From Mytilus trossulus (taxonomy: Eukaryota), in assembly GCF_036588685.1 (NCBI RefSeq), contig NC_086373.1, forward strand, positions 54,808,001 to 54,872,000: a DNA stretch of 64,000 nucleotides. The letters are read 5' to 3'. The notes under the pieces were generated by a model. It did not search any database, had not been told where the DNA came from, and was given only the letters and a program-made list of their open reading frames with translations. The translations under genes were made by a program, and so were the position numbers. This document shows, piece by piece, positions 1,951-56,885 of this stretch (position 1 is the stretch's first letter; the number at the start of each line of letters is the position of its first letter).

Positions 1951-4446
1951 AAAAAAAATAAAAACATTCTTTTATATTTTACAAATTAAAAATCAATATT
2001 TTGATATTATCCAACAAATATATTATGCAATTTTTGCTGACGGGGGCAAAATTTTTGTCAACGTGGCAAAAATATTTGCTGCTGCCACACAATATATACT
2101 ACTGTATGTATTGTTTTAAAATAGCTTTTCGTTCCGTGCATGTATGCATGAACTATTTGACACTGCACGTTCTGCAACCACCAATCTGTCAATCAATCGA
2201 TTTTATAGAAAAGATGTATCATATCTTACATCAAAACAATGTATAACGCCACCCGTTCATCTTTTTCTACAACATGATATATGTGCAGATCACACTGCTG
2301 ACATTACTAGACCAGGCCACATATACCTGAGGCTGTAGATGGGGGTTTACAGAATAGAGAATAATGAACAAAAAATAGAAAGAATAGTATCGGAAGTATT
2401 GGAACAGAATATAAACAAACAGGAACATAAATTGTACGGCTCTAATTAGAAATGATTACAGTTCAAACACAGCTGCATCATACATTAAAGTTAACGGTCA
2501 ATCAGACAGTCTGCTTAAGTTTACGAAAACAATAAATCTACAAATACTTAACACGCTAGGCCAAAGCAAATCAATCTAGGCAATTAAATACCGATCTTAG
2601 ATAAGAAATAAATGTGCAAGTTTCACCCTATGACAGTTTTCAGATAAAAAAAAAAAAAAAAGACGATTTTTAAGTTTGCTGAACATGTTGTGGCTAAAAT
2701 TATGTGCATATTCAGGACTTGAACAAAATAACAATAAATACAGTAGATATAGGTTCGTAATGGAATGTCTTTATTGACTTTGTCTTGTGTAAAAAGCTCT
2801 CTTGAAATCCCAGCGGGTTTAAGCAACTTTAAAGTAAGTGCTTTGGTACTTTTGTAGTTAATATAATTTTTTTTACTTAATTCGCCATTTATTATTTTAT
2901 AATTTACATATGAAACAATAACCCGGATAAATCATTCCAGAAACATGATAGTGCTTACATTTTATAAGAGGATAACAAAATTAGAGAATTATATTTATTT
3001 AGATTGATATCCATGATGGAGCAAAGTTTCAACCACTTTTTTATGTCCCTTTTTATCATAAGATATTCGCGTCATTATTTATATAAAGAATGATGAGGAT
3101 GACGATAAAAACGATGTCTGATGTCCAGTGGTAACTATTACAACATGCATACACCCAGAATAACAACATGATTTATGTTATTAACACGTTTTGTACCAGA
3201 AAAACTGAGTCAGATGTTTTGACGCATTTTTCAGCTGATACAAATAACTTTGTAAGAAGCTTAAGACGTGCCAAGACGCATTATTCTAACTTCAATCGTA
3301 CCAGTATTCAAATGCTTTCATTACTTATAAACGAATGTTTTCTTAACCTTCATTATTTGTTTGATAAGAGCAATGTTACATGTAATATCATGGAAAAAAA
3401 CATTGTTTTTTACGGAAAGCTGGAACAAGGAGCTAAGTCAACAGTGTTATATTCCGGACGTCAACACAAAAAAAAACAGCATGCAAATATATATATGGGG
3501 GATAAGTATACAATTTTTTACACATCAGACTGTACTAGTTATATCATAACTTTGGATACACCAAACAAGGTACTTTATATATGAGTAACAGGCAATGTAC
3601 GCCCTCTATTTTATAGAACTAATTCATAACTATTTGTTTCATTTGTATTCATCTGCCAAATGTGTGTGTTTTGCAAGGTTCAGCAGTTCTTACCCTTTCA
3701 TTTGATACATGTATTTATATAACTTACCAAAAATTATTCTGCATATAATATAGTTTGATTTAAATACGTAAGAACTACTATTTTTTTTAAATACGTACTT
3801 CTTTCCTTTTTGAACGCGCCCAAAATGGTTGGTGTAACATCTTACGAAGTCTATTAAATTTTTTGGGCAAACTATTTCGCTCTGGCTGTTGCTAGTGGTC
3901 GTCTTACACGTGCAGTGTTGTGAGATACTTTTCGTTCCACGTTGAAGGTTTAATGTGACTTACAGCAATTACAGCGCTGTTCCTTTGCTTAATTTTTTAA
4001 TGTGTTTTTTTTAATGTGGTTATATATTCATTTCTGTCACGGATTGATACCCAATATTCTTTTGTTTTTCTATGGAAAAAAATGTTCCTTTACAAAAAAA
4101 AAATATTGGTATATTCCAAACTTCGATTTTTTTTAATAATGTAAATGATTTTTAATTTTAACAAGGAGGTTATTATGAGATATTCTAACCTAACTAAACG
4201 AAAAAGAGAATTGTAATATAAAATCTTACGATTCTAAAGTTTCTTCGAACAAGATCTGTTATCATATGCTAATTACCCATATCATATTTTAATGACCACA
4301 TACTGTGGCCATCGTGATCATATAAACCCTAATAAATTATAAACATTCGAATGTAAAATTTCGCACGATAGATAATGACAAACAAACGACGGAAATTACA
4401 TAATAAATCCACAGCGTGTATCTTAATATATTTGTCAGTACATGGA

Positions 4447-4711: not shown

Positions 4712-5035
4712 AATAGATATAGGAGGATGTGGTGTGAGTGCCAATGAGACAACTCTCCATCCAAATAACAATTTAAAAAGTAAACCATTATAGGTTAAAG
4801 TACGGCCTTCAACACGGAGCCTTGGCTCACACCGAACAACAAGCTATAAAGGGCCCCAAAATTACTAGTGTAAAACCATTCAAACGGGAAAACCAACGGT
4901 CTAATCTATATAAACAAAATGAGAAACACGTATATATTACATAAACAAACGACAACTACTGTACATCAGATTCCTGACTTAGGACAGGTGCAAACATTTG
5001 CAGCGGGATTAAACGTTTTAATGGATCCAAACCTT
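4712..5035 (-). mobile_element. Naiad/Penelope-associated 3' end repeat, family B, 5'-truncated within the twister motif
   Basis: Near-identical reverse complement of about 10858-11188. Confidence 0.8.
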
Positions 5036-5499
5036 ATAAGCCTTTCATGCCTTCTGTTGACAAATTTTCTTAACTATGCACTATTTTAGTAGACCACCGA
5101 TGTCCTTTTTTAACTAAAAGAACCTCTTTGAAAAGACACACCTCAGTCGAATCTTTCTTCTCAAATGAATGCCTGAATGGTCATCAAATTTATACTTGTT
5201 ATGGGCAGGCATTTTCGAATAATTTAAAAAAAAATGTATTAATTCTGACTGCAAAATTAAGGAATTTTAAATGGTAAATAATATACATTGTATCTCGAGG
5301 GAAATGTACACACTTAGACAACAGTGAATTTTTTTTCATAAATATTATATAATGGTAAAAGTGTAGCATACACATATCATGTGTACTAACGATTAAACTC
5401 TGGAAGAAATATAGTCAAGCATGAATACAAATTAAAGGGTCCTATTTGGAAAAAATAAATTTTCTCAGAAAGGTATCTCTTTCTTCAGAGGTTTATATG

Positions 5500-6330
5500 A
5501 AACGTTCATGTCTGTTGTGCAGTGATGTTTTTTTCTTTCTCCGACGCCTGTATGCGAGACATAGTAGGTATTGCAACCCAGCGGCACCGGCGACGATGGT
5601 GTACACTCTTTTTTTGAAGCATTATATTTCATAGGTTAGACAATCTAAATGTTTCATACGATATGTTACGAAATTTCCGTCTGTCATATTTCAATGTCCC
5701 GGCAACCTCATTTTCATGGTTCAGTAACTGCTTGATACATTTTGTTTTGTTAAATAAAAAACTCACTTATTATGAGTAATATGATAACTATGTTTGGTAT
5801 ATGGGTTCCTAGCAACATTTACATGTTCGTCAGCTAGGTACATGTAGGGTGAACCTGACCTGGACCTTATTCCATGGATCATTTATCAAAGATAAAGTAA
5901 CTTAAGCAAGACTGTATCTAGATACTATAACTAGTCAGTCATCTATATTTGCTGTATTGATTATTGAAATGATTGTAAGCTGTACATATCTACCCGATAG
6001 GTTCCGTCTGACCTTGGCCTCAATTTCATAGTTCATTGGCCGATGTATGGTGTTGTGGTTTGGTCTATTTCTCAGATGCCTTAAGCAGTAGGGTACCAAT
6101 ATAATGTGTATCATGTATGGAATCATTGTCAGCTGGAAATGTCAGTCTGACAGGTCTCAATTGACTTCGACCTCATTTTTATGGTTCATTGGACAATTTT
6201 TAGTTGTGTGGTTGGGTCAATTTTTCGGGCATTATAAGCAATAGGTCAATAATATGCAGTGTATGGAACAACCATGACAACTGTGGTGTCATGTCTATTT
6301 GTCGGGGTAACATGACCTTAACCTAATTGT
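5500..6330. mobile_element. Degenerate non-autonomous element with internal tandem core repeats (Helentron/pearl-like)
   Basis: Recurrent GACCTCATTTT(C/T)ATGGTTCA-like cores and a GGC-rich microsatellite-like start. Boundaries are approximate. Confidence 0.4.
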
Positions 6331-8184: not shown

Positions 8185-8837
8185 GTTCAAGTGCATAGCA
8201 TAGCCATCTTTATCTTGCTGTATCCAGAGGCAATATATATATAAGAAGATGTGGTATGGGTGCCAATAAGACAACTCTCCATCCAAGTCACAATTTATAA
8301 AAGTAAATCATCAAAGGTCAAAGTACGGACTTCAACACTGAGCAAGACTGTTATTAATGACAATTAAAAGAGTGAATAATATTATATAAACAAAATAGAC
8401 ACCATAAATAAAAGAAAGACAGACAGTTTCTTCATCAAATATAATAAATTTTGGTATGATAACTAAAAATGTTTGAAATTGTTTTGAATTTATCGTTACT
8501 TCTTTCAGATCAGGCCTATCCAGAAGCAAGAAAAAGAACAATTCATAGCACGTTCATCTACAGAGAAAGACATGTTTAAAAAAACAGATTTATTTTCAAT
8601 TTTAGAAAAACCTGTTGAACTTTTACTATTTCTTATCTGTTTATTTTACATTTATATGTTGATATTTTTTTTTTAAATTGCTGCACAGTTTTTCTATTCA
8701 GTCCCATATAACAAAAATAGTCAGATCGCAACTTCAAATAAAATACATTTTTATGAATGTTACATGTCATTAAATAGACATGAAAGATGGAAAATTATAT
8801 AGGAACACATTTTTTATGACCTAAATGTATTGTCAAG

Positions 8838-10423: not shown

Positions 10424-10619
10424 CTGAAACGTAAAGAAATATTTTTTTTGAAATGCAGATAAAAAAAGACCCGAGATAGTTCGCTCGAAGCTTTCAAAAT
10501 ACTTTTCTCACTTTTCTGTCAATCAAATATATCACATACAAATTGTGTTTGAAAATGGTATACCGCAGGATATCATATTTTAAGATGTCACCATAATAAA
10601 AACCGGTTTTTTTCTAAAG

Positions 10620-11188
10620 TGAACATTGATTGGTTAAATATTTCTCAGTGTGTTTGAATTTGTTTGTTAGCTTTTTGGTCATGAATGTTTGTCTCTGATA
10701 TTTTATTAACTATGCATTTGTATTCAGATATCGCAGATCAAATTTGTTCGTTCATTGTGTAATCATTCGTTTTTTGATTGAGTTAAGTCTGCCAATTGAT
10801 ATTTTATCGTATGTTTTTCTATGTTGTGATGTTATGCTATTGTTTCAGAAAAAGGGAGAAGGTTTGGATCCATTAAAACGTTTAATCCCGCTGCAAATGT
10901 TTGCACCTGTCCTAAGTCAGGAATCTGATGTACAGTAGTTGTCGTTTGTTTATGTAATATATACGTGTTTCTCGTTTCTCGTTTTGTTTATATAGATTAG
11001 ACCGTTGGTTTTCCCGTTTGAATGGTTTTACACTAGTAATTTTGGGGCCCTTTATAGCTTGTTATTCGGTGTGAGCCAATGCTCCGTGTTGAAGGCCGTA
11101 CTTTAACCTATAATGGTTTACTTTTTAAATTGTTATTTGGATGGAGAGTTGTCTCATTGGCACTCACACCACATCTTCCTATATCTAT
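10620..11188 (+). mobile_element. Naiad/Penelope-associated 3' end repeat, family B
   Basis: Same module order as the RT-linked family C tail: twister, GGGGCC motif, then terminal GTTGTCTCATTGGCA. Left boundary is approximate. Confidence 0.7.
10845..10928 (+). ncRNA. Twister ribozyme, type-P5 permutation (family B)
   Basis: TCAGA-AAAA-GGGA-GAAGG-TT-TGGATCCA-TTA-AAACGTTT^AA-TCCC-GC-TGCAAATGTTTGCA-CCTG-TCCTAAGT-CAGG-AA-TCTGA. P5, P2, P3 and P4 all pair. Predicted cleavage at 10883/10884. Confidence 0.8.
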
Positions 11189-11780: not shown

Positions 11781-13066
11781 CTTCAAATTAAAAAAAAATA
11801 TAAGCTAGGTCTATGGCTATTGAAATAGATTACGCTTATTTTATTATCTGTATGTTTAGAAAACAGCAATAGATCATGCAGTAATCTCCGACTTAAAGTC
11901 CAAGATTGCTCTGATGAATGAGCGACTCCAATACTGACAAAGTCAGCACAATCTCGGACTAACTGAGTACGTTTGGAAGAACATGATAAATTATAAGTCG
12001 ACATTGGCTTTGAAATAGCTTACAGTAACTGCGAGTACTTTTATATCGGTGCTCAGTGTCTTTTTTCAATGAATAAGTTTTTTTTTATTGTGCTTAGTGT
12101 CTATCTAGTGAGACACGCTATTTCCAACTTATGTGTCTCGTGTTTTGATGTAACACCCTTGCCCAAAGTTAGCTGAGGGTACATGGGTTCTTTTATATTC
12201 TTTTTGTTCTGTATTAGTCTGTTGTTTGTTCGTTTGAATTGTTTCACCTATTGTCATGTCGGGGCTTTTAATAGCTGACTATAGAGTATGTGTTTTTTTT
12301 AAGTGTTTAAAACCTTGCGCTGACAGATAATTGCTTAAATTGAAGTCATTGTGGACTTTGTTTTGAACAAATGTATTTGTATAGATATAGGAAGATGTGG
12401 TGTGAGTGCCAATGAGACAACTCTCCATTTAAATAACAATCTATAATTTGTGTCTTGTTTGCAGTGATGCCACATCTCCTTATTTGTTATTCGTATCCTG
12501 TCAATGGTTGATGGTTGTCAAGGGTAGTAACTCCATCATATTGAATTTCAGAAGGTTTTATTTTCATTGTGTGAAAACTCCCCCACATTCCCATCCCTTT
12601 TAGAGGTTGCAACTCCTCATTCAGTATTGACCAATGTATTTTTGACTGTTCTGTTTAAGAACTTGTTAGCATTCAAACTTCAAAAGGTTTTCGTATTTTG
12701 CCTATCAACCTTTAAAACTTTCTTTTGTACTTTTAACGATAATCATTCTTTTTAACATGCTAATTTCATAGTTAAACGGTTAATACCATACACAAATCAT
12801 TTGACATTAATTCATGAATACATTACATTAAGATAAGCTAGATGAATTTGTTATATTTCTGATGTCATTTACAAATGTTAGTTCAATAATAAATAGCATA
12901 AAAGAATAATAAATAAATGAAATGCATGAAAAGGGTCGTTTTCGCATAATCACCCAAAGAAAAGTCATTATGTTTTGATATCCCCTGTTAGACACACTTT
13001 CGTTTAAATGGTCGTCAAAATATGAATAGAAATGTATGTTTGCTGTTGTTATATATATATACATAC

Positions 13067-14475: not shown

Positions 14476-15043
14476 AATATAAAAAAGAAGATGTTGTATG
14501 ATTGCTAATGAGACAACTATCCACAAAAGACCATAATGACACAGACATTAACAACTATAGGTCACCGTACGGCCTTCAACAATGAGCAAAGCCCATACCG
14601 CATAGTCAGATATAAAAGGCCCCGAGAAAACAATGTAAAACAATTCAAACGAGAAAACTAACGGCCTTATTTATGTAAAATAATAAACGAGAAACAAATA
14701 TGTAACACATAAACAAACGACAACCACTGAATTTACAGGCTCCTGACTTGGGACAGGCACATACATAAATAATGTTGCGGGGTTAAACATGTTAGCGGGA
14801 TCCCCCCACCCACCCACCCCTTAACCATGGACAGTGGTATAACAGTACAACATAAGAACGAACTATAAAAATCAGTTAAAAAAGGCTTAACTCATCACAT
14901 GGACAAAAATACAAGTGGACGTGGCCGGGTACTTATACATCCCGATACAAAAAGACACAATGAACAGATATGAGATTACTCGCAGTTATCATCTGACAGC
15001 TAGTTCAAAGCCACTAACAACTAATAAAAAAATCATGCATCTA
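14476..15043 (-). mobile_element. Naiad/Penelope-associated 3' end repeat, family A, with a damaged twister at 14736-14828
   Basis: Contains CCTGTCCCAAGTCAGG, AACATGTT, GGGATCCC and the GGGGCC motif. The GAGGG segment is replaced by a GGGT expansion. Confidence 0.7.
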
Positions 15044-16005
15044 AACACAGATTTCAGCAACATGCCAGTATTAATACCGGTGAGATGAAATTAAACTTTG
15101 ATTTTTTATTTCATTGATAAATTTTTAAAAAGGCTTGTGGTTTTTTTTCTTTTCTTTTTATTCACTTTTTTAAGGCATGCAACACTTGTCTGTTCGGAAT
15201 TTGGACTCTGGTGAAAAGTTGTGTCATTGGCAATCATACCGCCCAAACCTCAATATTTGTATATCATAAGGATTTATTTATTATATATCTATATAGAATA
15301 GAATTGAAATAAAAAGTTCAGTATTATACTATATGTCTCAAATGCCAAATTTTTTTTTTATTTACAGTGAAAATTCAAATCCCTAAGAAACTGATATGAA
15401 AAGACATATGAGTTTGACTGAAAACCTATTGACCACATGCAGGTATGAATTCATATGGCTTTTGATAACTTGCTTACATTAAGTATATGTGTTTTACGGA
15501 TTACTGTGAAATATTAAATCAAACAATCTAAATATTATTATAAACAAAATGTTTAATTTGACACTTGTTGAGGACAACTTTAAAAAAAAAAAACAGCTAT
15601 GGATAACTGAATAATAAATTTTAAAAAGTAAGTCTAATTTGTTTGCTCAGACATTGTGTAGTTAAGAAAAACTGTTTGAACAAACATTAAGATTTGCTAC
15701 TTGTTCATCGGATCCGTTTTAAAAAATTGAAGGGAAGACATAACTAAAAGCCATTTTAATATTTAATAGGGGATAATATACTGCTCCTTTCCATATGCCA
15801 TTGGTAAATAAATAAATTTGGTGTTTTTACTGTCTTCTGATTGGTTAAAATTATTAGTTTTATTTTCAATGTTGTCAATTTTGATGGCGACACGCCCACT
15901 CTGACGCTGTGTATTCATACGCCAACATGTGTGTACGCTTGTTATTGTGAATATAAATAATATAAAAAGTTCTTTGAGCCTGATTTTTGAAAGAAATTTA
16001 TTTAT

Positions 16006-22435: not shown

Positions 22436-23121
22436 ATTCGATACGACAAGTGCTGCTGACCGCACAATTTTTGAGCAACAGGACGGTTGCCACATGAGGA
22501 GCAGGATCTACTTACCCTTGCGGAGCACTTGAGATCGCCCGCAGTATTTGGTCGAGTTCGTGTTTTACTCGGTCTTTAGTTTTCTATGTTGTTTCTTGTG
22601 TACTATTATTTGTCTGTTTCTCTTTTCTATTTTTAGCCATAGCGTTGTCAGTTTATTTTCGATTGGTGAGTTTGACTGTTCCTCTGGTATATTTCGCCCC
22701 TCTTTTATAGTAACTATCCGGCTCATGGTATCATTTCTTCTGAATGTTACATACCTTTAATAATATGCTGATTCAAAATCAAATATCAAAAACATATAAT
22801 TAAGCTTATGGAGGAATGGTTTGAAAAATGTTTGATATAAAATAAACAGGAAATATTGGTATAACTTTTACTAGGAAATAAAATTGAGAATGGAAATGGG
22901 GAATGTGTCGGAGAGACAACAACCCGACCAAATAAAAAAAAAAACAACAGCAGAAGGTCACCAACAGGTCTTCAATGTAGCGAGAAATTCCCGCACCCGG
23001 AGGCGTCCTTCAGCTGGCCCCTAAACAAACATATACTAGTTCAGTGATAATGAACGCCATACTAATTTCCAAATTGTACACAAGAAACTAATATAAAAAT
23101 AATACAAGACTAACAAAGGCC

Positions 23122-23204
23122 AGAGGCTCCTGACTTGGGACAGGCGCAAAAATGCGGCGGGGTTAAACATGTTTGTGAGATCTCAACCCTCCCCCTATAC
23201 CTCT
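23122..23204 (-). ncRNA. Twister ribozyme, type-P5 permutation (family C), ~320 nt downstream of the RT stop
   Basis: AGAGGT-ATA-GGGG-GAGGG-TT-GAGATCTC-AC-AAACATGTTT^AA-CCCC-GC-CGCATTTTTGCG-CCTG-TCCCAAGT-CAGG-A-GCCTCT. Predicted cleavage at 23165/23164. Confidence 0.82.
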
Positions 23205-23520
23205 AACCAATGTAGAAAAGTAAACGCATGACAATACGCACATTAAAATTCAGTTCAAGAGAAGTCCGAGTCTGATGTCAGAAGATGTAACCAAAGAAAA
23301 TAAACAAAATGATAATAATACATAAATAACAACAGACTACTAGCAGTTAACTGACATGCCAGCTCCAGACTTCAATTACACTGACTGACTGATTATGATT
23401 TCATCATATGAACATCAGGCACAATCCTTCCCGTTAGGGGTTTAGTATCATACCATCATAACATATATGAGAAGAACATAACCCGTGTCATGCCAACAAC
23501 TGTTTTTAGAATAAATGTGT

Positions 23521-24152
23521 TTAGTTTCGACGCAAAGACCTTATCAGTGACTCAATATTAACGCCAAAATATGCAATCTTTAATGACTTGACAACATTAT
23601 CGTAAGTATATCCCTTCTTAATACGTCTATTCAAAGGTTTTGTAAGTTTCTGAGGTGAATACTGACACCTTTGTGCTTTATAAAGAATATTTCCATAAAA
23701 AAATGGATGTGAAATACCTGAACGTATAAGAAGTCTGCATGTTGAGCTATATTTACGAATGATGTCTTTATACCGATAATAAAATTTAGTAAATGTTTTG
23801 ACTAGTTTGTGATATCGAAAACCCTGGTGTAATAATTTTTCAGTAATACATAAATTTCTCTCGTTAAAATCTAAAACATTGTTACATGCACGAGCAAATC
23901 GTACAAGTTGAGATATATAAACACCGTAAGATGGTGACAAGGGAACGTCACCATCTAAAAACGGATAATTAACGATAGGAAATGAAAAATCATCCCTTTT
24001 ATCATAAATTTTAGTATTCAGCTTTCCGTTAGTGATATAGATATCAAGATCGAGGAAAGGGCAGTGGTCATTGTTAGTATTAGCTTTATTTAAAGTAAGT
24101 TCAGCAGGATAAATTTCATTAATATACATACTGAAGTCGTCATTATTGAGAG
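23521..24152 (-). pseudogene. Penelope-like reverse transcriptase C-terminal fragment (~210 aa, open)
   Basis: RT-like sequence begins at LNNDDFSMY, just after where the YIDD motif should be. The upstream part of the ORF-track entry is flanking DNA. Confidence 0.85.
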
Positions 24153-27100
24153 TGTGTGCTATTTTTAAACATAGACGCGACCGTTGAGAAATCACAATGA
24201 TATCTTTTGGTTGAGACACTTGTGTTCCACCACAATTGGAAGTATACGATAAAAATAAAATAAAGATGATGTAGTATAATGACCAATGATTCAACTATCT
24301 ATAAAGACTGAAGTTAAAACATATGAACAATTATTGGTCACCACATGTCTTTTTGTGTGTTAGCTCCTGTTGTCGTATATTATATATACATGCTTATCAT
24401 AATTGTATTGTATTTACTGTATAGATATATCGTCTATTTATGTATGAATTTAAATTGTATTGACCTCTTGTACACTGTTGCAAACATCAGATCTAGAGTA
24501 AGCTGTGAAAGTCCCGGGTTAACACAATTGATAAGTAAAAACAAACAAACAACAAGAACTCATATACCATTGTATCGAAACAGCATACTAGTATTATAAT
24601 TACTTGCAGTATATTTTTAGTATGTCAATATCAACAAGACAAACATTCTAACTAATCCTTAAATAGATTATTTGTCTGATCTATGGTCGGATTGTTGTCT
24701 CTTTGACACATTCCCCATTTCAATTCTCAATTTTATTTGAAAAACTCCATTGAGATCTATGATCTCTTTTAATTATATCTCGTGCGTATTAATTTGTTAC
24801 TTGCTAATATTCTAAACGATCAAAGATATGTGGTTCTATGTTAAATTGTTACTGCACTAGCTTAATACCAAATTCAAAGTACACATTAATATGTTTGTCT
24901 CTTTGAATTTGACTAAAAAAAACTTCTACCAACAAAAATATGAATTATTTTTGGATTAACTTGACACATGTCCAATGTATCGTATCGTTTTAAATATTAA
25001 TGATATTTTTTTGCCAAAAAATTCCAATGAATTAATAAAACAAACCGTTAAATGATCATAATCATACTTGATCGGCAAAAATGTGACCACATAAATCGAA
25101 AAGTTAATCAATAGGTATTTGTAAAGAAAGAATCGATTCTTTGATGCGCTTTATAAATAGTATCAATAATATAAGAAGGTAAACAATGCACAGTATATGC
25201 TACCTATACCACGAAATGATTCGGAGGTTGCAACATACCGGAGCTAATTGATGCAATATTGAAGTTCTTGATTGGAGGTCAAAATAGAAGTTGTGGTTCC
25301 TAGAATAATCATTGTAATGTGTTGTTTAATTAAAGAGATTATTAATTAGATCATTTTTAATGAAAAAAGTTAACAAGTTCAATTTCAGTATTTGCAATCT
25401 TAACTTTATACCGATCTAATGCAGTTTCTTAAAATATCTGCAGGTACATGTATCTAGGATAAATAAAGAGATGTGGTATAAATGCCAATGAGACGACTAT
25501 CCAACAATATACATTTTAAAAGTAGATTTTAGTATCTATAGGTCACCGTTCGACACTCAAAAAATGGGCAAAGCCCGTAACGTATTTTTGCATCTTAAAA
25601 TAAGCACCGATAAATAACAATGTAAAAATGTTGAATATCAGCGAGGACATATGTTCACATCACACGAATGGATAACAAAAGTCATGTTCCTGATTTGGTC
25701 CAAGCATTTTCTTATGTAGAAAATGGTGGCATATAGACGTTGTTATATATATCTAGATTAACCTTTTCACTTGAATGAACGTAGCGTACAATTTCATTAC
25801 ATTAACAACAATGAGTGAACAAAACAAACAGACGTAATAGATAAAATTGTCAAAAATAGGAGAACAGCAGTCAATATGTCAACAAAGCAACACAAAAAGG
25901 TATACAGACACAACACGCCAGCAAAAACGGAAGACAAGAATACACAAATTCATTATAGCACAACAACGCAATGATGGGATGTGTAAGTACCGAGCCACGT
26001 CAAATAGACATTTGCCTAAGAGTTCGGAATTTTTGTTATTTTACTTATTTCAGCAAATGTGTGATGATATCTTTTTACATTATCTGTTTGATGAGTCTCC
26101 TTTTTTTTGATTTATTAGTCTGGAACATGTCTTTTAAATATTTAAGTTATAATTGTCAAATTTGTATTTCCATTAAAACACGACGGGTACAAATTTACCA
26201 GACGTTGATCAGGATCTGTGTAACCTTTCAGAGCACATAAGATCACTCAGACTATAATGGTTGGGTTCAATTTGGTCATCCTTTAGTTTTCTATGTTCTG
26301 TTTTGTAAACTGACTGTCGCTCGTTTATCTTTTGGTTTTTCCATGGCGTTGTCAGGTCGTCTTCGACATATGAGTCTTTTGTCTCTCCTATTTTTTTTGT
26401 GATTTCCATGTTCGCGTTTTGTGGTTATATTTTTTTACCGTGGCTTAATAATGAATTGCATATATAGGCGTCAGAATTCGAATGCATCTTCAACCTCTAT
26501 TTTTCAATTACCGGGAGTAATCATGATCACCAACCGATATTTTGTGGAAATATATATTCTTCTTTATGTTAGTTGTTGTTGCGCTGACCGTCGAATCGAG
26601 TAATTTACAACTGATCTTTACACTTTGTTTTTATGTTGTTCGTTTACACCACTGTCCCAGGTAAGGTCAGAGTTGAGTTCTTTATATTGAAACATATTTT
26701 ACTCCTTAACGTTCTTGATCTGTCTCTCCAAAATTATGATCATGTAATTCTAGGATTCCATGGGTTGCTTTCTCAGTTTCTGTCATATTTGTTCTGTCAT
26801 AAGTTAGGCTGTTGGTTTTCTCGTTTGAATTGTTTCATATTTTGCATGCATGTCATAGCCTTTTCATGCTGACAATGCAAACTGGGTTTTCTCCCTTTGT
26901 TGAAGACCGGAAGCTGATAAATAATTGTTTTCTTCCACGTCATTTTGACTATGACGGATAGTTGTTTCATTGACATTCATATCACATCTTCGTATTTTTA
27001 ATTATTTAGGCCTAAGTCATCTACTGAACAGTATTCTTGACTTTTTAATAAGGTTTAAATGCCGTTTTCGTGACCAGCATATAAACTCATTTGCAAATTT

Positions 27101-28815
27101 TCTTGACGATAACAGTTAGCTATACCCGTCATTTTACATTTGGGATTTCTATCCATTGATGACAAATATAGACAAACTGGTAGACGCAATTTATCTGATT
27201 GTATACGTTTAAATATTAATTTGAATATAAAGTCAATCATCATCATTATTGAATGAGCCAGTGCAGATATTCTAAAATTTCAAATAATTTACGGCCTTCG
27301 AGTAGTTAACTTTGTAATGCTCTACGAATACCTTTTGCGATATTAGTAAAATCTAATTTTTACGATGCATATTATGAAATAAACATTTTGAAATAATATA
27401 TATAGGCAGCAATTTTTTCAAACAACCCTGAGTTACAAACTAGAGGCGTCCTATATCTGTTATATTTCCTATTTTGGAAATTTCTAAATATTATCTTTTA
27501 GCATCTCTATACCTTGCATTTTGCATATATTGCTAGAAAATTGTATTAATACATTTGGGAAGACTGGAAACAGTTTTATCTTAATATCTTTTGTAGTTTC
27601 AAGATGGAACCTGGAAAACCTGGAATTGATTTCAAGCTTGTAGCATCCAACGTCAAACCCAACTTCTTATTCTCACATCCCGCGGTTTTTGATGTGATTT
27701 AAATGAACAAAGTTTTGTGTTTTTTTTTAGTATTGATTGATATTGACCTTTCGTTACTTTTCTCTCTGGGTTTTGCAATATGATAATTGACCTATAATTT
27801 GCATTGCCCTCTTTACTTCTTCTTTCTCTGATTACAAATTTTGTAGAAAAATAAACATGCAATTTTTTTTAAATCACGTTAAATAGTTTCGCATGTTTTT
27901 CTTTTGAACAATTTTCTCATTTATAAATTTGAGCAGTAATTTCCAAATTTACAGTATCTGCTTGCAGTGATTATATTTCGTGAAGAAAGAAAAATTATTT
28001 CAATTTGTTAGGACATTTTAGAACAGTGTAGAATGTGAATACTATAATTTGTCCCTTGATTAATTATACTTTAATTGTTCAACATGGATGTTTAATTTGT
28101 TTAAATTACGTAACGATATGAAAAAGAATTTCAAAAGTGGCATCGTGTAGTTGTTGATTGATGTCGATTTGTCGTGACAACGAAATCTTAATTGAAGTAT
28201 TCGTTGTAAATGCCAAAAAATGTTGGTTATTCCAAACTTGGAGCAAAGGACCCTGAAACTTGTTTTGTTAACTGTTTAATGAATTCAAAAGCGATATGGA
28301 TGATATCTAAGTTACAATGATAAATTGGTTTTACTTTTCTAGTTTTTATTGTACGTTTTTGTATATTCCAATGGCCATTGCATTGTCCGACATAACTATA
28401 AAGGGGCAGTTTAAATACGTTATTAATTTTTCTTTTCAATATTTCATCTTATTTTCCCTTATTTTTCTTGATACAGATCGAATCACTACTATCTTAGAAT
28501 ATATGTATTTATATGTTCACAGTGCTGTTTTCGAAGTGAACACTTCAAAGTACAAAAGGAAACCGCTGACTATGCGGTATGGGCTTTGTTCACTGTTGAA
28601 GGCCGTATGGTGACATAAAGTTGTTAATGTTTGTGTCATTTTGATCTTTTGTGGATAGTTGTCTCATTGGCAATCATACCACATCTTCTTTTTTATATTT
28701 CAAAAGAGGGTTTATGCCGGCTTGGTCGCATGCGGTATTAATTCGTTCAGCGTAGTGTTCTTTCTTTAAATGCGTTGATTGAACATCTCTGATGGACTCT
28801 GATATATCTATTTAT

Positions 28816-34900: not shown

Positions 34901-36742
34901 ATGAGATTATATTGCAATTGGTATTTGATGTCAACACGCAAGCGTATCATAGAGCAATAAATGATAAAACATTAATTGATATTGCTCATGCAATTAGACT
35001 ATGTGGATTTCAACATATAAAGTTACAACGCGGAAATATACCCATAATTGTTTCGAATACAATAAGCAAACAGTTCCATCTGCAATGATAAAACTATAAT
35101 TACGCAATGAGAATCGACGGATGACATTCAGGACAAACAAATCGGTTGTTTGAGCGCCAATGGATATGTTTTAGCGCCTCTGCTTTAATCCATTTTTAGC
35201 AAACAATTAAACTATCAATGCTCACTTTAGCGACAGAAAATCCATTTTTTACTTATTTATTATAATAATTGTCGAAATGTACTTCTGTTCATGTAAGCCA
35301 AGACAGCACACTATTAAAATGTCATTTTCATTAAAATGCTAACTTTACTCAATAAAGCCAATGATCTCATTTACACCATCGGTTTCTGAACTTTAAAAGT
35401 TTAAAATATTTTTGTAACCAGATTTGTATTTCAGTTATCGTACATGATATAAATGGCTCTTGATATACTACCTCGACAATATTTACAAAATAATATCTGA
35501 ATTTCTTGGCTTTTTAATACATTTTAAATGCAAGCATGGAATACATTAGATATTGCACCATTCTGTCTTTTAAATAGTTTTACATTGTAACACCCTTTTT
35601 GTCACTTTCAGAATAATTGATAAGTATATGGAAAGTTTCATGGGTGCTCTATCTATCATAGGATTGCTCTTTATACTGTAAAGTTAAGCCTTGCTTGAAA
35701 TTGCGATATGATTTTATATTATTCATAATACAAAAGCCTGCTGTTCTCTGCTCGTGGGAGTTATGATAACGAGCATTCCATGCTAATAGTGCTACTTGAA
35801 GAATTTCATTCATAATATCAATATGAATGTACGGATATACTACTTATAATTTGTCATTCCAGCTGAGAAAATAAAGTCTTGCCAAATTGCTGATATTCAT
35901 TTATCTCTAAGAAGAATCGGTGCGTTGTTTATTAATGGTAAAAAAAAAAAAAAAAAAAAAAAAATAACCAGCTATAGAAGGATTGTCACCACCTTGGTCC
36001 AAGGAAAACCGAAAATAAAAATCTCACAACCAAAAATACCAACAAAAAACCCTGATGTGAGCTCTTTAGCAATCAATTGTTTCCTTTCATGCCTATATCC
36101 ACGCGTGAACTCATTTAAAACAACCATTCTCTGAGCATGGAATGATAATCTAATATGGTTCAATTATTACGTTTATGAAACATTGCTTAGGTTTGATTTA
36201 AAAATTAATTCTTATTGAATTGTGCAAGAGTGTTAGGTTGTTTTTTTTTAGGCAGATAGTCTTGCCAGAAAGGTGCGGTTTTTGACTTTTGGCTTGTATG
36301 CACAATGTTTAGTGCCGAAATATATAAGAATTCGAAATATGTATAAAACACTGAAAATCTGAAATAACAATAAATAAAACCAACATAAAAAAAAGATGTG
36401 GTATGATTGCCAATGCGACATTAACAGATATAAGTCACCGTATTAGACCGTTGTTTTTCCCGTTTGAATGGTTTACACTAGTAACTTTGGTGCCTTTTAT
36501 AGCTTGTTGTTCGGTGTGAGCCAAGGCTCCATGTTAAAGACCGTACCTTGACCTATAATGGTTTACTTTTATAAATTGTTATTTGGATGGAGAATTGTCT
36601 CATTGGCAATCATACCACATCTTCCTATATCCAAGTAAACAGCAAGGTCGACGATCTTTAATTACAAATTATTGTCATAAAACTGGATGGTTTTTTTCTA
36701 AATGAAAATATATATAGACTATATGTGGATATTTCAATCATA

Positions 36743-41497: not shown

Positions 41498-43133
41498 TTA
41501 ATTTTCATAAAGTCAATGCATAACATCGATACAAAGTTAATAACTACTAGTATTTATGATTTCTACGAAATATGGGAGAGAGGTTAAAAGTCAACAAGAG
41601 GGCTGATTATAAGCATTAAACGCCATAAAATAAATTAAAAATTGCTTTTTTGTGTTTCTCGTTTGGTGTTCGTAATCGAATGGTTTTACACAAGTCATTT
41701 TGGGGCCCTTTATTGCTTGCTGTTAGGTGTGAACCAAAATGCTGAAGACCGTAAATTGACTTACTTATACTGTTTACTTCTACAAATTTACCACATTTTC
41801 TTAATTATATCTTTTTAGTTGTAAAAGCAACAAGAACATGAAATGGACTTTTAAACCAAAGTTGACGGCGTTAAATTTACTACATTTGGTCGACGCTCTC
41901 TGTACAATGAGCTCTATTTTATACATATTGGTATTTTTCAGGTTATGCCATCGGATATCAGTTTGAACTATGTAGCTATTTAGATGGTACATGTAATCCA
42001 CAGTGTGAATATAAGTTTGTACATTCATGGGGCATATCACTGTGTTCTTCCCCTATCGACAGCTGTTGTGCACCTCCAGCATATGGTATGTTTACTAAAT
42101 AACAAATACGTTATGTTGTTAAAAACATATATTCATACAAATATAGAAGATACATATCTGAAAGAGATTACACTAAACGGTTGACTATGGGAAATATGTT
42201 TTTGAAAAGCTTTGGTGAATGCAACGAAAAAAATGAACCTTTACAATAAATGGTTAAAGTCACAAGAAACGAGTGACTGATGAAAAATAATGGTTATCCA
42301 ATTCTTGAACCAATGCATGTATATATCATAAACTTAGTGTTCTGTGCACGATTCTATAATTTTTTACGCAAATATATCGTATAATCGTCAATTCTTTTTC
42401 TCTCTGTCTGTTAGGATTTAACTAATATGGCAGCTATTAAATGCCGTGTTTTGACTCCGACGTTTACCGATTGTCACCTTAGAGTAAACAATCAACAAAA
42501 AAGCATGGATATTGAGCACGTGTTTCATATGTACAATCAGATAGTAGTTTATTTCAGTAACAGATTCATGCGTATTGCGATCACCGGATTTTTACGAGAA
42601 GGTTCACGTTAAGGTCACTTTGCATACGGAAAATATGTCGGCGAATTGCTTCTTGGAATCAAGCAATTAAAAAGGAGTAAACTTCTTCTAAATGTGGACA
42701 AATTAAAGAATTTTCTTCAGAAAAAAGTATATGTACACAAGTTTAATAATGAAAACTATCCATTCTGTTATAAAAAAAAACATGCATCATTTTTTTTTAA
42801 TTTGAGGTTTCATAGGATTTTTATTGATAATTTGAGGTTTAACTTTCGGGGTCAATGACATGCACACCTCTCGAACGATGGAAAATGGAACAGTTATATA
42901 ATACGAAGAATACGATCCGGTCAAGGACTGCTACTTAAATCAAGGACATTTGTGGATGATAATTTGCCTACCGAAAGAATAACAAACTACTCTGATTATG
43001 GTTAAACAAGTTTGCTTTAACTTAAATTCAAGAAACGTTTTTTTATGATAGTCACATGATCAGTCAAATATCACCTACAATTAAACAAAATATTTTATCC
43101 GCTGTTAACATTTTTTTGATTGATTTTTTGCAG

Positions 43134-52930: not shown

Positions 52931-53341
52931 AATAAAATTGAGAATGGAAATGGGGAATATGTCAAAGAGACAACAACCCGACCAAATAAAAAAAAAACAG
53001 CAGAAGGTCACCAACAGGTCTTCAATGTAGCGAGAAATTCCTGCACCCGGAGGCGTCCTTCAGCTGGCCCCTAAACAAATATATACTAGTTCAGTGATAA
53101 TGAACGCCATACTAATTTCCAAATTGTACACAATAAACTAAAATTAAAATAATACAAGACTAACAAAGGCCAGAGGCTCCTGACTTGGGACAGGCGCAAA
53201 AATGCGGCGGGGTTAAACATTTTTGTGAGATCTCAACCCTCCCCCTATACCTCTAACCAATGTAGAAAAGTAAACGCATAACAATATGCACATTAAAATT
53301 CAGTTCAAGAGAAGTCCGAGTCTGATGTCAAAAGATGTAAC
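52931..53341 (-). mobile_element. Family C Naiad 3' end, near-identical to 22877-23291
   Basis: Direct sequence match with only a few differences. Confidence 0.88.
53172..53254 (-). ncRNA. Twister ribozyme, type-P5 (family C, second copy)
   Basis: Same as 23122-23204 except for one substitution in the second palindrome. Confidence 0.78.
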
Positions 53342-54922: not shown

Positions 54923-55642
54923 CTGAAATGTAACAACCAAGATCAAAGTAATAGTTATGAGTGTTTACTATTTCTTTGAAATAATTTATCGACCATTAAA
55001 CAAGATTAAGTGTTACTTGTATTCTCATTTGAATTGTTTTAATTTGTAAGTTCGGGGTATTTTATATCTGACGTTGCGGTATAGGCTGTGCTCATTGTTG
55101 AAGGCTGTGATGGGAACTTATATTCGTTAAGTTCTGTGTCATTTTGTCTTTTGGAGAGTTGTTTATTTGATAATCTTACCAAATCTTCTTTTTATATTTA
55201 ATAAACTAAGTATATGCATCTGTCCTAAGTCAGGAACCTGATGTTCAGTGGTTGTCGTTTGTTGGTTTGGTTCATAAATATTTCTCGTTTTTTGTTTTAT
55301 TCTAGATATATTGATCTATAATGGTTAGCTTTTACAAATTGTAACTTGGATGGAGAGTTGTCTCATTGGCACTCATACAACATCTTCTTATATCTATTTA
55401 CATGAAGAAGATCGGTTTCTATGCTGTCAGTATGTCCGATATGGGGAATACCAAACATAATTTGAACGGTTTTTCAAATATTTTTTTCATTATAACCAAC
55501 GAAGGTTACATTCGAATATTAGTGTACTATTTTTACTATGAAAGAGTCTGAAGGTGTTTATGAAACTTTCAGGAGTGAACGCAAACACAAAGTATCTGCT
55601 TCAATATAAAATGTTGTCTGCAAAACTTTAAAAATATCTTAC

Positions 55643-56793: not shown

Positions 56794-56885
56794 GTCATTA
56801 AAGTGAGAGGGTTAGCGCTATAAAACTAGGTTTAATCCACCATTTTCTACATTTGAAAATGCCTCTACCAAGTCAGGAATATGAC
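56794..56885 (+). ncRNA. Twister-like motif, type-P5, divergent family E (P4 mismatch in this copy)
   Basis: GTCAT-TAAA-GTGA-GAGGG-T-TAGCGCTA-TA-AAACTAGGTTT^AA-TCC-AC-CATTTTCTACATTTGAAAATG-CCTC-TACCAAGT-CAGG-AAT-ATGAC. Confidence 0.6.

Follow-up and report, generated by a model that had tools for sequence, protein, structure and literature searches.

Among eukaryotic retroelements, Penelope-like elements make up the third major class, and the hammerhead ribozymes that they carry are a defining but unexplained feature of it. The hammerheads of canonical Penelope elements are, like the motif described here, small ribozyme motifs in an untranslated repeat region; the elements insert as tandems, and the helix beside the cut site gives way to palindromic sequence, which makes pairing between copies necessary (Cervera and de la Pena 2014, PMC4209133). 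The minimal Penelope hammerhead, with its palindromic helix III, is thought to be active only when copies within a tandem transcript pair (PMC4209133). The Naiad/Chlamys clade, whose copy numbers reach the tens of thousands in bivalves and crustaceans, has been described as having no hammerheads; from this it was suggested that the elements can do without the ribozyme, or even that it parasitises them (PMC8557442).

Twisters have also been found in retrotransposons. In the Perere-3/RTE elements of Schistosoma mansoni, a twister that likewise has an unconventional P1 lies at the 5' end, defines the 5' terminus of the RNA and has target-site duplications beside its cut site (Liu et al. 2021, PMC8501958), and truncated twisters in RTE elements were mentioned in a note marked 'in preparation' (PMC7761336). 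A survey focused on type-P1 twisters, with retrotransposons outside its scope, predicted twisters in bivalves (PMC11662667). Our literature search, which covered few subscription journals, found no paper that reports a twister in Naiad or other Penelope-like elements as a finding.

Here we analyse a motif in a 64-kb stretch of DNA (the window; 166 ambiguous bases). Judged from sequence comparison, it is rather probably a permuted twister that forms a module of the Naiad 3' untranslated region (UTR), is predicted to cut itself between U23165 and A23164, and would assemble its P1 from two copies.

The host is a Naiad-type Penelope-like element

The motif lies in a truncated element with the following features:

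22876-24152, minus strand: 5'-truncated copy of a family-A Naiad (blastn to the full tandem unit, 96.8% identity, reference positions 812-2103)
23521-24294, minus strand: open frame with a C-terminal reverse transcriptase (RT) fragment, stop codon at 23521-23523
23405-23469, minus strand: SECIS-like hairpin (Rfam SECIS_1, 32.3 bits, gathering score 35)

The copy consists of the C-terminal part of the RT, the 3' UTR and a sharp 3' end at 22876 that is common to more than 30 copies with variable 5' ends. Its RT fragment is 95% identical to RT residues 271-480 (tblastn) and 95-96% identical to well over a hundred scored genomic copies; a first look at the 1.3-Gb genome gave 38,092 RT candidates. 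Intact copies are arranged head to tail with a period of 4016 bp, against the 3.4-4.4 kb expected of a Naiad unit. Translation of an intact unit (L048, 7193-9910) places a GIY-YIG domain in the first 25 residues, N-terminal to the RT, followed by C-N-C (CxC) near residue 290, RT motifs downstream that include Y-L-D-D, and P-A-D-K-A (DKA) with an in-frame TGA immediately after it (8465-8467). The diagnostic features of Naiads described by Craig et al. 2021 (PMC8557442), from which we took the DKA signature, are thus present: an N-terminal GIY-YIG domain with CxC, the change of DKG to DKA, tandem units and 5' truncation. The host is a Naiad-type Penelope-like element. Motifs of two further families, B and C, adjoin Naiad-type RTs that are 70% and 44-50% identical to that of family A.

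The sequence-only reading of this DNA, made earlier without database searches, had stated that Naiads were reported to lack canonical hammerheads. This is stated in PMC8557442, and our own search for a canonical hammerhead gave no match at E ≤1 in 18 Naiad loci or in the window.

The SECIS-like hairpin begins 52 nt past the stop codon (E 4e-5 for the 161 nt searched) and occurs again at L048 5930-5994 and L073 3207-3269 (30-33 bits, gathering 35). Among the bivalve Naiads are some that code for selenoproteins (Craig et al. 2021, PMC8557442), and family A is probably one of these selenocysteine-encoding Naiads.

A twister-like core in the 3' UTR

The motif sits about 300 nt upstream of the sharp 3' end of the element, and in the intact reference the predicted cut site lies 359 nt past the stop codon. 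We scored it with a covariance model, R1, which was built from 12 families and contains neither the pseudoknots nor P5. The parts below are given in 5' to 3' order of the RNA after the whole motif, all on the minus strand.

23118-23208, minus strand: whole twister-fold motif, 87 bits with R1
23199-23208, minus strand: P5 5' strand, 10 nt, partner 23118-23127
23192-23195, minus strand: P2 3' strand GGGG after an AUA linker, partner 23159-23162
23187-23191, minus strand: GAGGG, consisting of G-A and the T1 strand GGG; G 23191 is the presumed general base
23177-23184, minus strand: palindrome 1, 8 nt, after UU, in the position of the P1 3' strand
23166-23173, minus strand: palindrome 2, 8 nt, after ACA, in place of the P1 5' strand and ending beside U-1
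23163-23165, minus strand: U^AA, predicted cleavage U23165/A23164, a position that agrees with the Rfam twister consensus
23159-23162, minus strand: P2 5' strand CCCC, directly 3' of U^AA
23157-23158, minus strand: GC, the T2 strand, partner G-U of L4 at 23133-23134
23145-23156, minus strand: P3 hairpin, 4 bp; 4/4 outer pairs covary
23129-23144, minus strand: P4, CCUG-UCCCAAGU-CAGG, with the 8-nt loop L4 UCCCAAGU at 23133-23140
23118-23127, minus strand: P5 3' strand after a single A, pairing with the P5 5' strand

In T1, GGG at 23187-23189 pairs with CCC of L4 at 23137-23139. The motif measures 83-91 bases. The sequence-only reading had placed a twister core with type-P5 order at 23122-23204, about 320 nt from the RT stop. 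All the strands that it named are present on the minus strand; its span falls inside 23118-23208, which includes the 10-bp closing P5, and starts 317 nt from the stop at 23521-23523. The cut sites that it predicted here and in another copy, 23165/23164 and 10883/10884, are correct as U^A positions. The minimum-free-energy fold of the monomer pairs GGGUU with AACCC and has no twister core (z = -2.4); we gave this fold no weight because nested-only prediction cannot represent pseudoknots.

Comparison with described twisters

Rfam twister models gave no match at gathering in the window, where the best was a partial twister-P1 match of 13.3 bits (gathering 67.2) that aligned P3 and P4. A search of the whole genome with RF02684 found nothing above the cut-off (best 24.9 bits, gathering 37.6), and the best full-length Rfam twister match in a related locus scored 24.1 bits. 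Set beside the Rfam consensus, the core agrees element by element: UAA, a 4-bp P2, GC, a P3 closed by C-G, P4 with the loop UCCCAAGY, an A-rich junction and GAGGG. The P4 loop, UCCCAAGU here, corresponds to the 8-nt loop UCCCAAGC of the twister consensus, and the marks of the class (U^AA 5' of P2, the P2 flanks, the P4 loop, T1 and T2) are all present.

The closest described form is twister type P5 (RF02684, in a clan with twister-P1, RF03160, and twister-P3), with which the Naiad motif shares the element order, the conserved nucleotides, P2, P4, the optional P3 and P5, and the double pseudoknot of T1 and T2, which here covaries. It differs from type P5 in having two 8-nt palindromes instead of the P1 hairpin, in the last base of L4, mostly U or G in place of C and accompanied by a corresponding change in the T2 partner, and in a P4 of CCUG/CAGG or ACCG/CGGU, and its scores lie far below gathering; one Naiad clade also has a 4-nt GAGG and a bulged P2. 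The assignment to a permuted type-P5 twister made in the sequence-only reading holds for the core, the order of elements, the helices and the pseudoknots, but not for the Rfam thresholds or for a P1 in cis.

The same genome contains canonical-looking type-P1 twister candidates, unrelated to the Naiad motif, with the loop CCGG-UCCCAAGC-CCGG. They lie at L003 1483-1542 on the minus strand (G000:C7, ~26.31 Mb) and L002 1512-1596 on the plus strand (G000:C2, ~74.86 Mb), with 55.5 and 30.5 bits (gathering 67.2), and R1 matches them weakly, at about 20 bits.

Copies in the window and in the genome

Further copies of the motif were found at these positions:

53178-53248, minus strand: second family-A copy, 84.2 bits, inside a 430-bp 5'-truncated tail at 52931-53341
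10845-10928 (model match 10851-10922), plus strand: family-B copy, 81.6 bits, in a 596-bp tail at 10593-11188
4972-5045, minus strand: family-B copy, 5'-truncated within the motif, 58.3 bits
14741-14824, minus strand: family-C copy with GAGGG mutated, 50.1 bits, in a 568-bp tail at 14477-15044
56800-56878, plus strand: decayed copy of a fourth family, related to locus L095, 45.3 bits
55147-55235, plus strand: partial copy, covariance-model match

The four copies that had been listed from the letters alone (10845-10928, 14736-14828, 53172-53254 and 56794-56885) were all recovered as covariance-model matches, and two more (4972-5045 and 55147-55235) came to light. The compensatory changes listed with them, in P5, P2, P3 and T1, are all real; in the family-B copy at 10845-10928, for example, P2 is UCCC/GGGA and T1 is UCCU/GAAGG. 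The copy at 4972-5045 has neither the P5 5' strand nor the P2 3' strand.

The P4 motif occurs seven times in the window, compared with 0.01 expected, and the core pattern has ~18,700 matches in the whole 1.3-Gb genome, compared with 34 for a reversed control. These matches are mostly dead copies of three families and nearly identical to one another, and nothing can be concluded from copy number by itself. The 135 nt surrounding the twister motif are the only segment of the UTR that can be aligned between families A and C.

Other features of the Naiad tails were seen along the way. A stretch 3' of P5 that ends in GTTGTCGTTTGTT is conserved in families B and C (10929-10960; 14700-14735, minus strand) and in the partial copy at 55219 (55235-55260), and the entire 3' tails of families B and C and of the 55219 copy are ~70% identical over 400 nt. 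The window also has many 3'-terminal fragments of family B/C Naiad tails, 60-190 bp long and without the twister (36442-36631, 8233-8343, 12369-12449, 28594-28700, 41678-41737 and 55316-55402). As extreme 5' truncations, these show that the window is heavily seeded with Naiad tails. At L129 (G000:C1, ~5.498 Mb), two differing twister-bearing tails lie on the same strand at 4312-4389 and 5501-5574. We considered whether this pair, 1189 nt apart, might be a short tandem, retrozyme-like unit bounded by twisters and think this improbable: the two look like different truncated tails, probably from nested insertions.

The motif accompanies Naiad RTs in independent loci

An independent sample consisted of 80 Naiad RT loci from metagenome contigs, chosen by protein patterns only. 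A descriptor based on the conserved nucleotides matched 26/80 loci, always on the RT strand and never on the opposite one, with 0.12 expected from shuffled sequences; R1 matched 36/80 loci, every time on the RT strand. In most metagenome loci the cut site lies 333-363 nt past the estimated stop. When only loci with at least 700 nt of downstream sequence were counted, 17 of 26 had the motif.

In the other nine of these 26 Naiad-like loci the motif was not detectable, and a search of the nine for a hammerhead or any other Rfam ribozyme also returned none. Seven of them have an RT that is at most 45% identical to that of family A; the others are L065 (51%) and L125, a rearranged fragment. These results support the view that the motif is a conserved 3' UTR module of Naiad-type Penelope-like elements that recurs in divergent families.

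In the metagenome contig L095, a motif at 784-864 precedes the RT match by ~2.1 kb, the arrangement that a partial tandem copy lying upstream (pseudo-LTR) would give; the third pair of its T1 is A-U (loop UACC, GAGGU).

Helices and pseudoknots covary between families

A MAFFT alignment of 12 families, made from sequence only, has 96.6% standard pairs at the proposed positions, as against 77% for shuffled and 30-44% for slid controls, and both sides change in 19/25 pairs. When 35 distinct sequences were aligned to R1, 95.8% of cells paired, as against 72% (shuffled) and 36-44% (slid), with covariation between families in 21/25 pairs. The descriptor and R1 select for some of the pairs that are then counted; the parts free of this bias are the MAFFT-only alignment, the unmodelled pseudoknots, P5 and the palindromes.

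Covariation support was found across divergent families in P2, P3, P4, P5, T1 and T2. P2 pairs in 94-98% of cells, and 4/4 of its pairs show two-sided changes. The P4 stem covaries, with A-A-G of L4 kept in 30-32/32 sequences. T1, which is absent from R1, is 100% paired in the 12 families, with double changes from GC to AU, and in the 35 sequences it is 95% and 82% paired with GC, AU, UA and GU types; one large clade has a T1 of 2 bp plus a U-U mismatch, and P2 is bulged there. T2, also absent from R1, is 97-100% paired, and its variable pair (76-201) takes five forms (CG, AU, GU, GC and UG) at 97% pairing. P5 is a stem of 5-21 bp in 24/24 families with unrelated sequences, compared with a mean of 3.7 bp for a null in which the flanks of different families were combined. 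Among the unpaired nucleotides, A+1 and A+2 are invariant (32/32), N-1 is U in 27/32, the G of L4 is kept in 32/32, G-A in 29-30/32 and the last junction base is A in 30/32. As far as comparative sequence analysis can show it, these data show that P2, P3, P4, P5 and both pseudoknots form, and that the unpaired nucleotides of the active site have been kept across lineages.

The likeness to a twister might still be a chance resemblance in a high-copy repeat that is under no constraint at the RNA level, the palindromes being sites that act in DNA. The Rfam scores below threshold and the fact that most genomic copies are dead and near-identical would fit this view. We consider it very improbable, because 21/25 pairs covary between families, including both pseudoknots that the model lacks, and because the motif is specific in strand and position beside RT genes that were fetched by protein alone.

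Two palindromes in place of P1

To form P1 in cis, the stretch that follows GAGGG would have to pair with the one that precedes U^AA, and in no family are the two complementary. Each strand is replaced by a palindrome: palindrome 1 starts two bases past T1, and palindrome 2 ends at or beside U-1, in every family. Across 35 sequences, palindrome 1 is 97% self-complementary, with covariation at 4/4 positions, and palindrome 2, which also covaries, is 99% self-complementary. From family to family their sequences change but remain self-complementary, and some of the pairs are G-U. Such G-U pairs speak further against the chance reading, as do sequences that vary freely as long as they remain self-complementary, which ill suit a protein-binding site. 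Because a perfect palindrome of 8 nt is unable to form a hairpin by itself, pairing between two copies is the simplest reading. Cofolding, restricted to nested structures, predicted homodimers that were 8-16 kcal/mol better than two monomers, which supports such pairing weakly.

The presence of two covarying palindromes in place of P1 suggests a pairing of two copies, as in the Penelope hammerheads. The Naiad motif differs from those hammerheads in belonging to the twister class, in its Naiad host with an N-terminal endonuclease, and in having a pair of distinct palindromes where the hammerheads have a single extended helix III.

P1 has been reported to be dispensable for twister activity (PMC11662667), so the monomer could also be active. 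The twister might then cut as a monomer, and the palindromes would serve dimerisation for RNP packaging or the template switching that makes tandems. Imperfections in P1 do not lower cleavage (PMC11662667), in keeping with this idea, and Perere-3/RTE elements have active truncated variants at their 5' ends (PMC8501958; PMC7761336). Several points tell against it. If the RNA cut itself constitutively in cis, the open reading frame would be parted from the 3' end, at which insertions start; almost every copy of more than 300 bp runs on through the site; and the palindromes sit exactly at the positions of both P1 strands in every family. We therefore regard a monomer twister as unlikely, and prefer the reading in which two copies pair.

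No traces of cutting in genomic copies, and a possible mechanism

Genomic copies were also searched for cut ends. Of 100 family-A copies sampled downstream of the cut site, ~96 continue upstream, and 100/100 of those sampled upstream continue downstream through it. Copies starting at A+1, as would arise if cut 3' fragments served as templates, were looked for, and at most 1-3 break near the site; none of 100 ends at U-1. Since inserted copies run unbroken through the cut site, the RNA that served as their template was either uncut there or rejoined. In this the Naiad motif, internal to the 3' UTR and with copies that read through the cut site, differs from the twisters of Perere-3/RTE.

The intact copies would also fit a twister-like fold that no longer cuts and by which the Naiad RT recognises the RNA or is positioned on it, close to where reverse transcription starts. 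Within the 3' UTR, the motif is separated by ~300 nt from a 3' end that is sharply defined; the Penelope RT initiates internally on its own RNA (PMC11167929); and genomic copies have no cleavage footprint. But A+1, A+2, G-A and the AAG of L4 are near-invariant down to ~40% RT identity, and a pure protein-binding scaffold is not expected to keep the unpaired nucleotides of an active site. A fold of this kind that has lost cutting seems to us distinctly unlikely.

We favour instead a self-cutting twister. By the usual twister chemistry, the RNA would cut itself between U23165 and A23164. Because the strands of P1 are replaced by two self-complementary stretches of 8 nt, the full helix probably needs two copies, and the fully helical form would probably arise only when two copies are paired, either as two RNAs or as ribozymes within a tandem transcript. 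Such a need would restrict cutting to multimeric transcripts, as has been proposed for the dimeric hammerheads of canonical Penelope elements. More speculatively, unit-length products may be rejoined or circularised, and the unbroken cut sites of inserted copies would then be accounted for. The facts described above would fit a scheme in which multimeric transcripts are cut conditionally, when two copies pair, and the products may then be circularised.

A stricter version would be an obligate two-copy twister, in which the palindromes are the split halves of a shared P1 and the products are circularised and become templates for internally initiated, rolling reverse transcription. We put this version forward tentatively and think it somewhat doubtful. 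A parallel to the uncut genomic copies has been reported for a Poseidon element: it initiates reverse transcription internally, can dispense with its hammerhead in vitro, and has no RNA-seq ends at the hammerhead cut site (PMC11167929). As the hammerhead is not needed for canonical Penelope insertion in vitro, a role in processing is unproven even there.

Implications for Penelope-like elements and twisters

If Naiads do carry a conserved twister in a comparable position, a small self-cleaving ribozyme would be a general requirement of the Penelope-like class, met by two unrelated folds. The motif would also place twister, of whose biology in animals little is known, in a second retroelement context and would be a natural case of a twister whose architecture requires a partner copy, and ~18,700 twister-type motifs in one animal genome would have been missed by standard Rfam annotation. 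An obligate two-copy twister, if true, would explain both the tandem insertions and the intact cut site in every copy; it would also explain how a 'ribozyme-less' clade came to out-proliferate its hammerhead-bearing relatives, and would amount to a convergent swap of hammerhead for twister within one class of retroelements.
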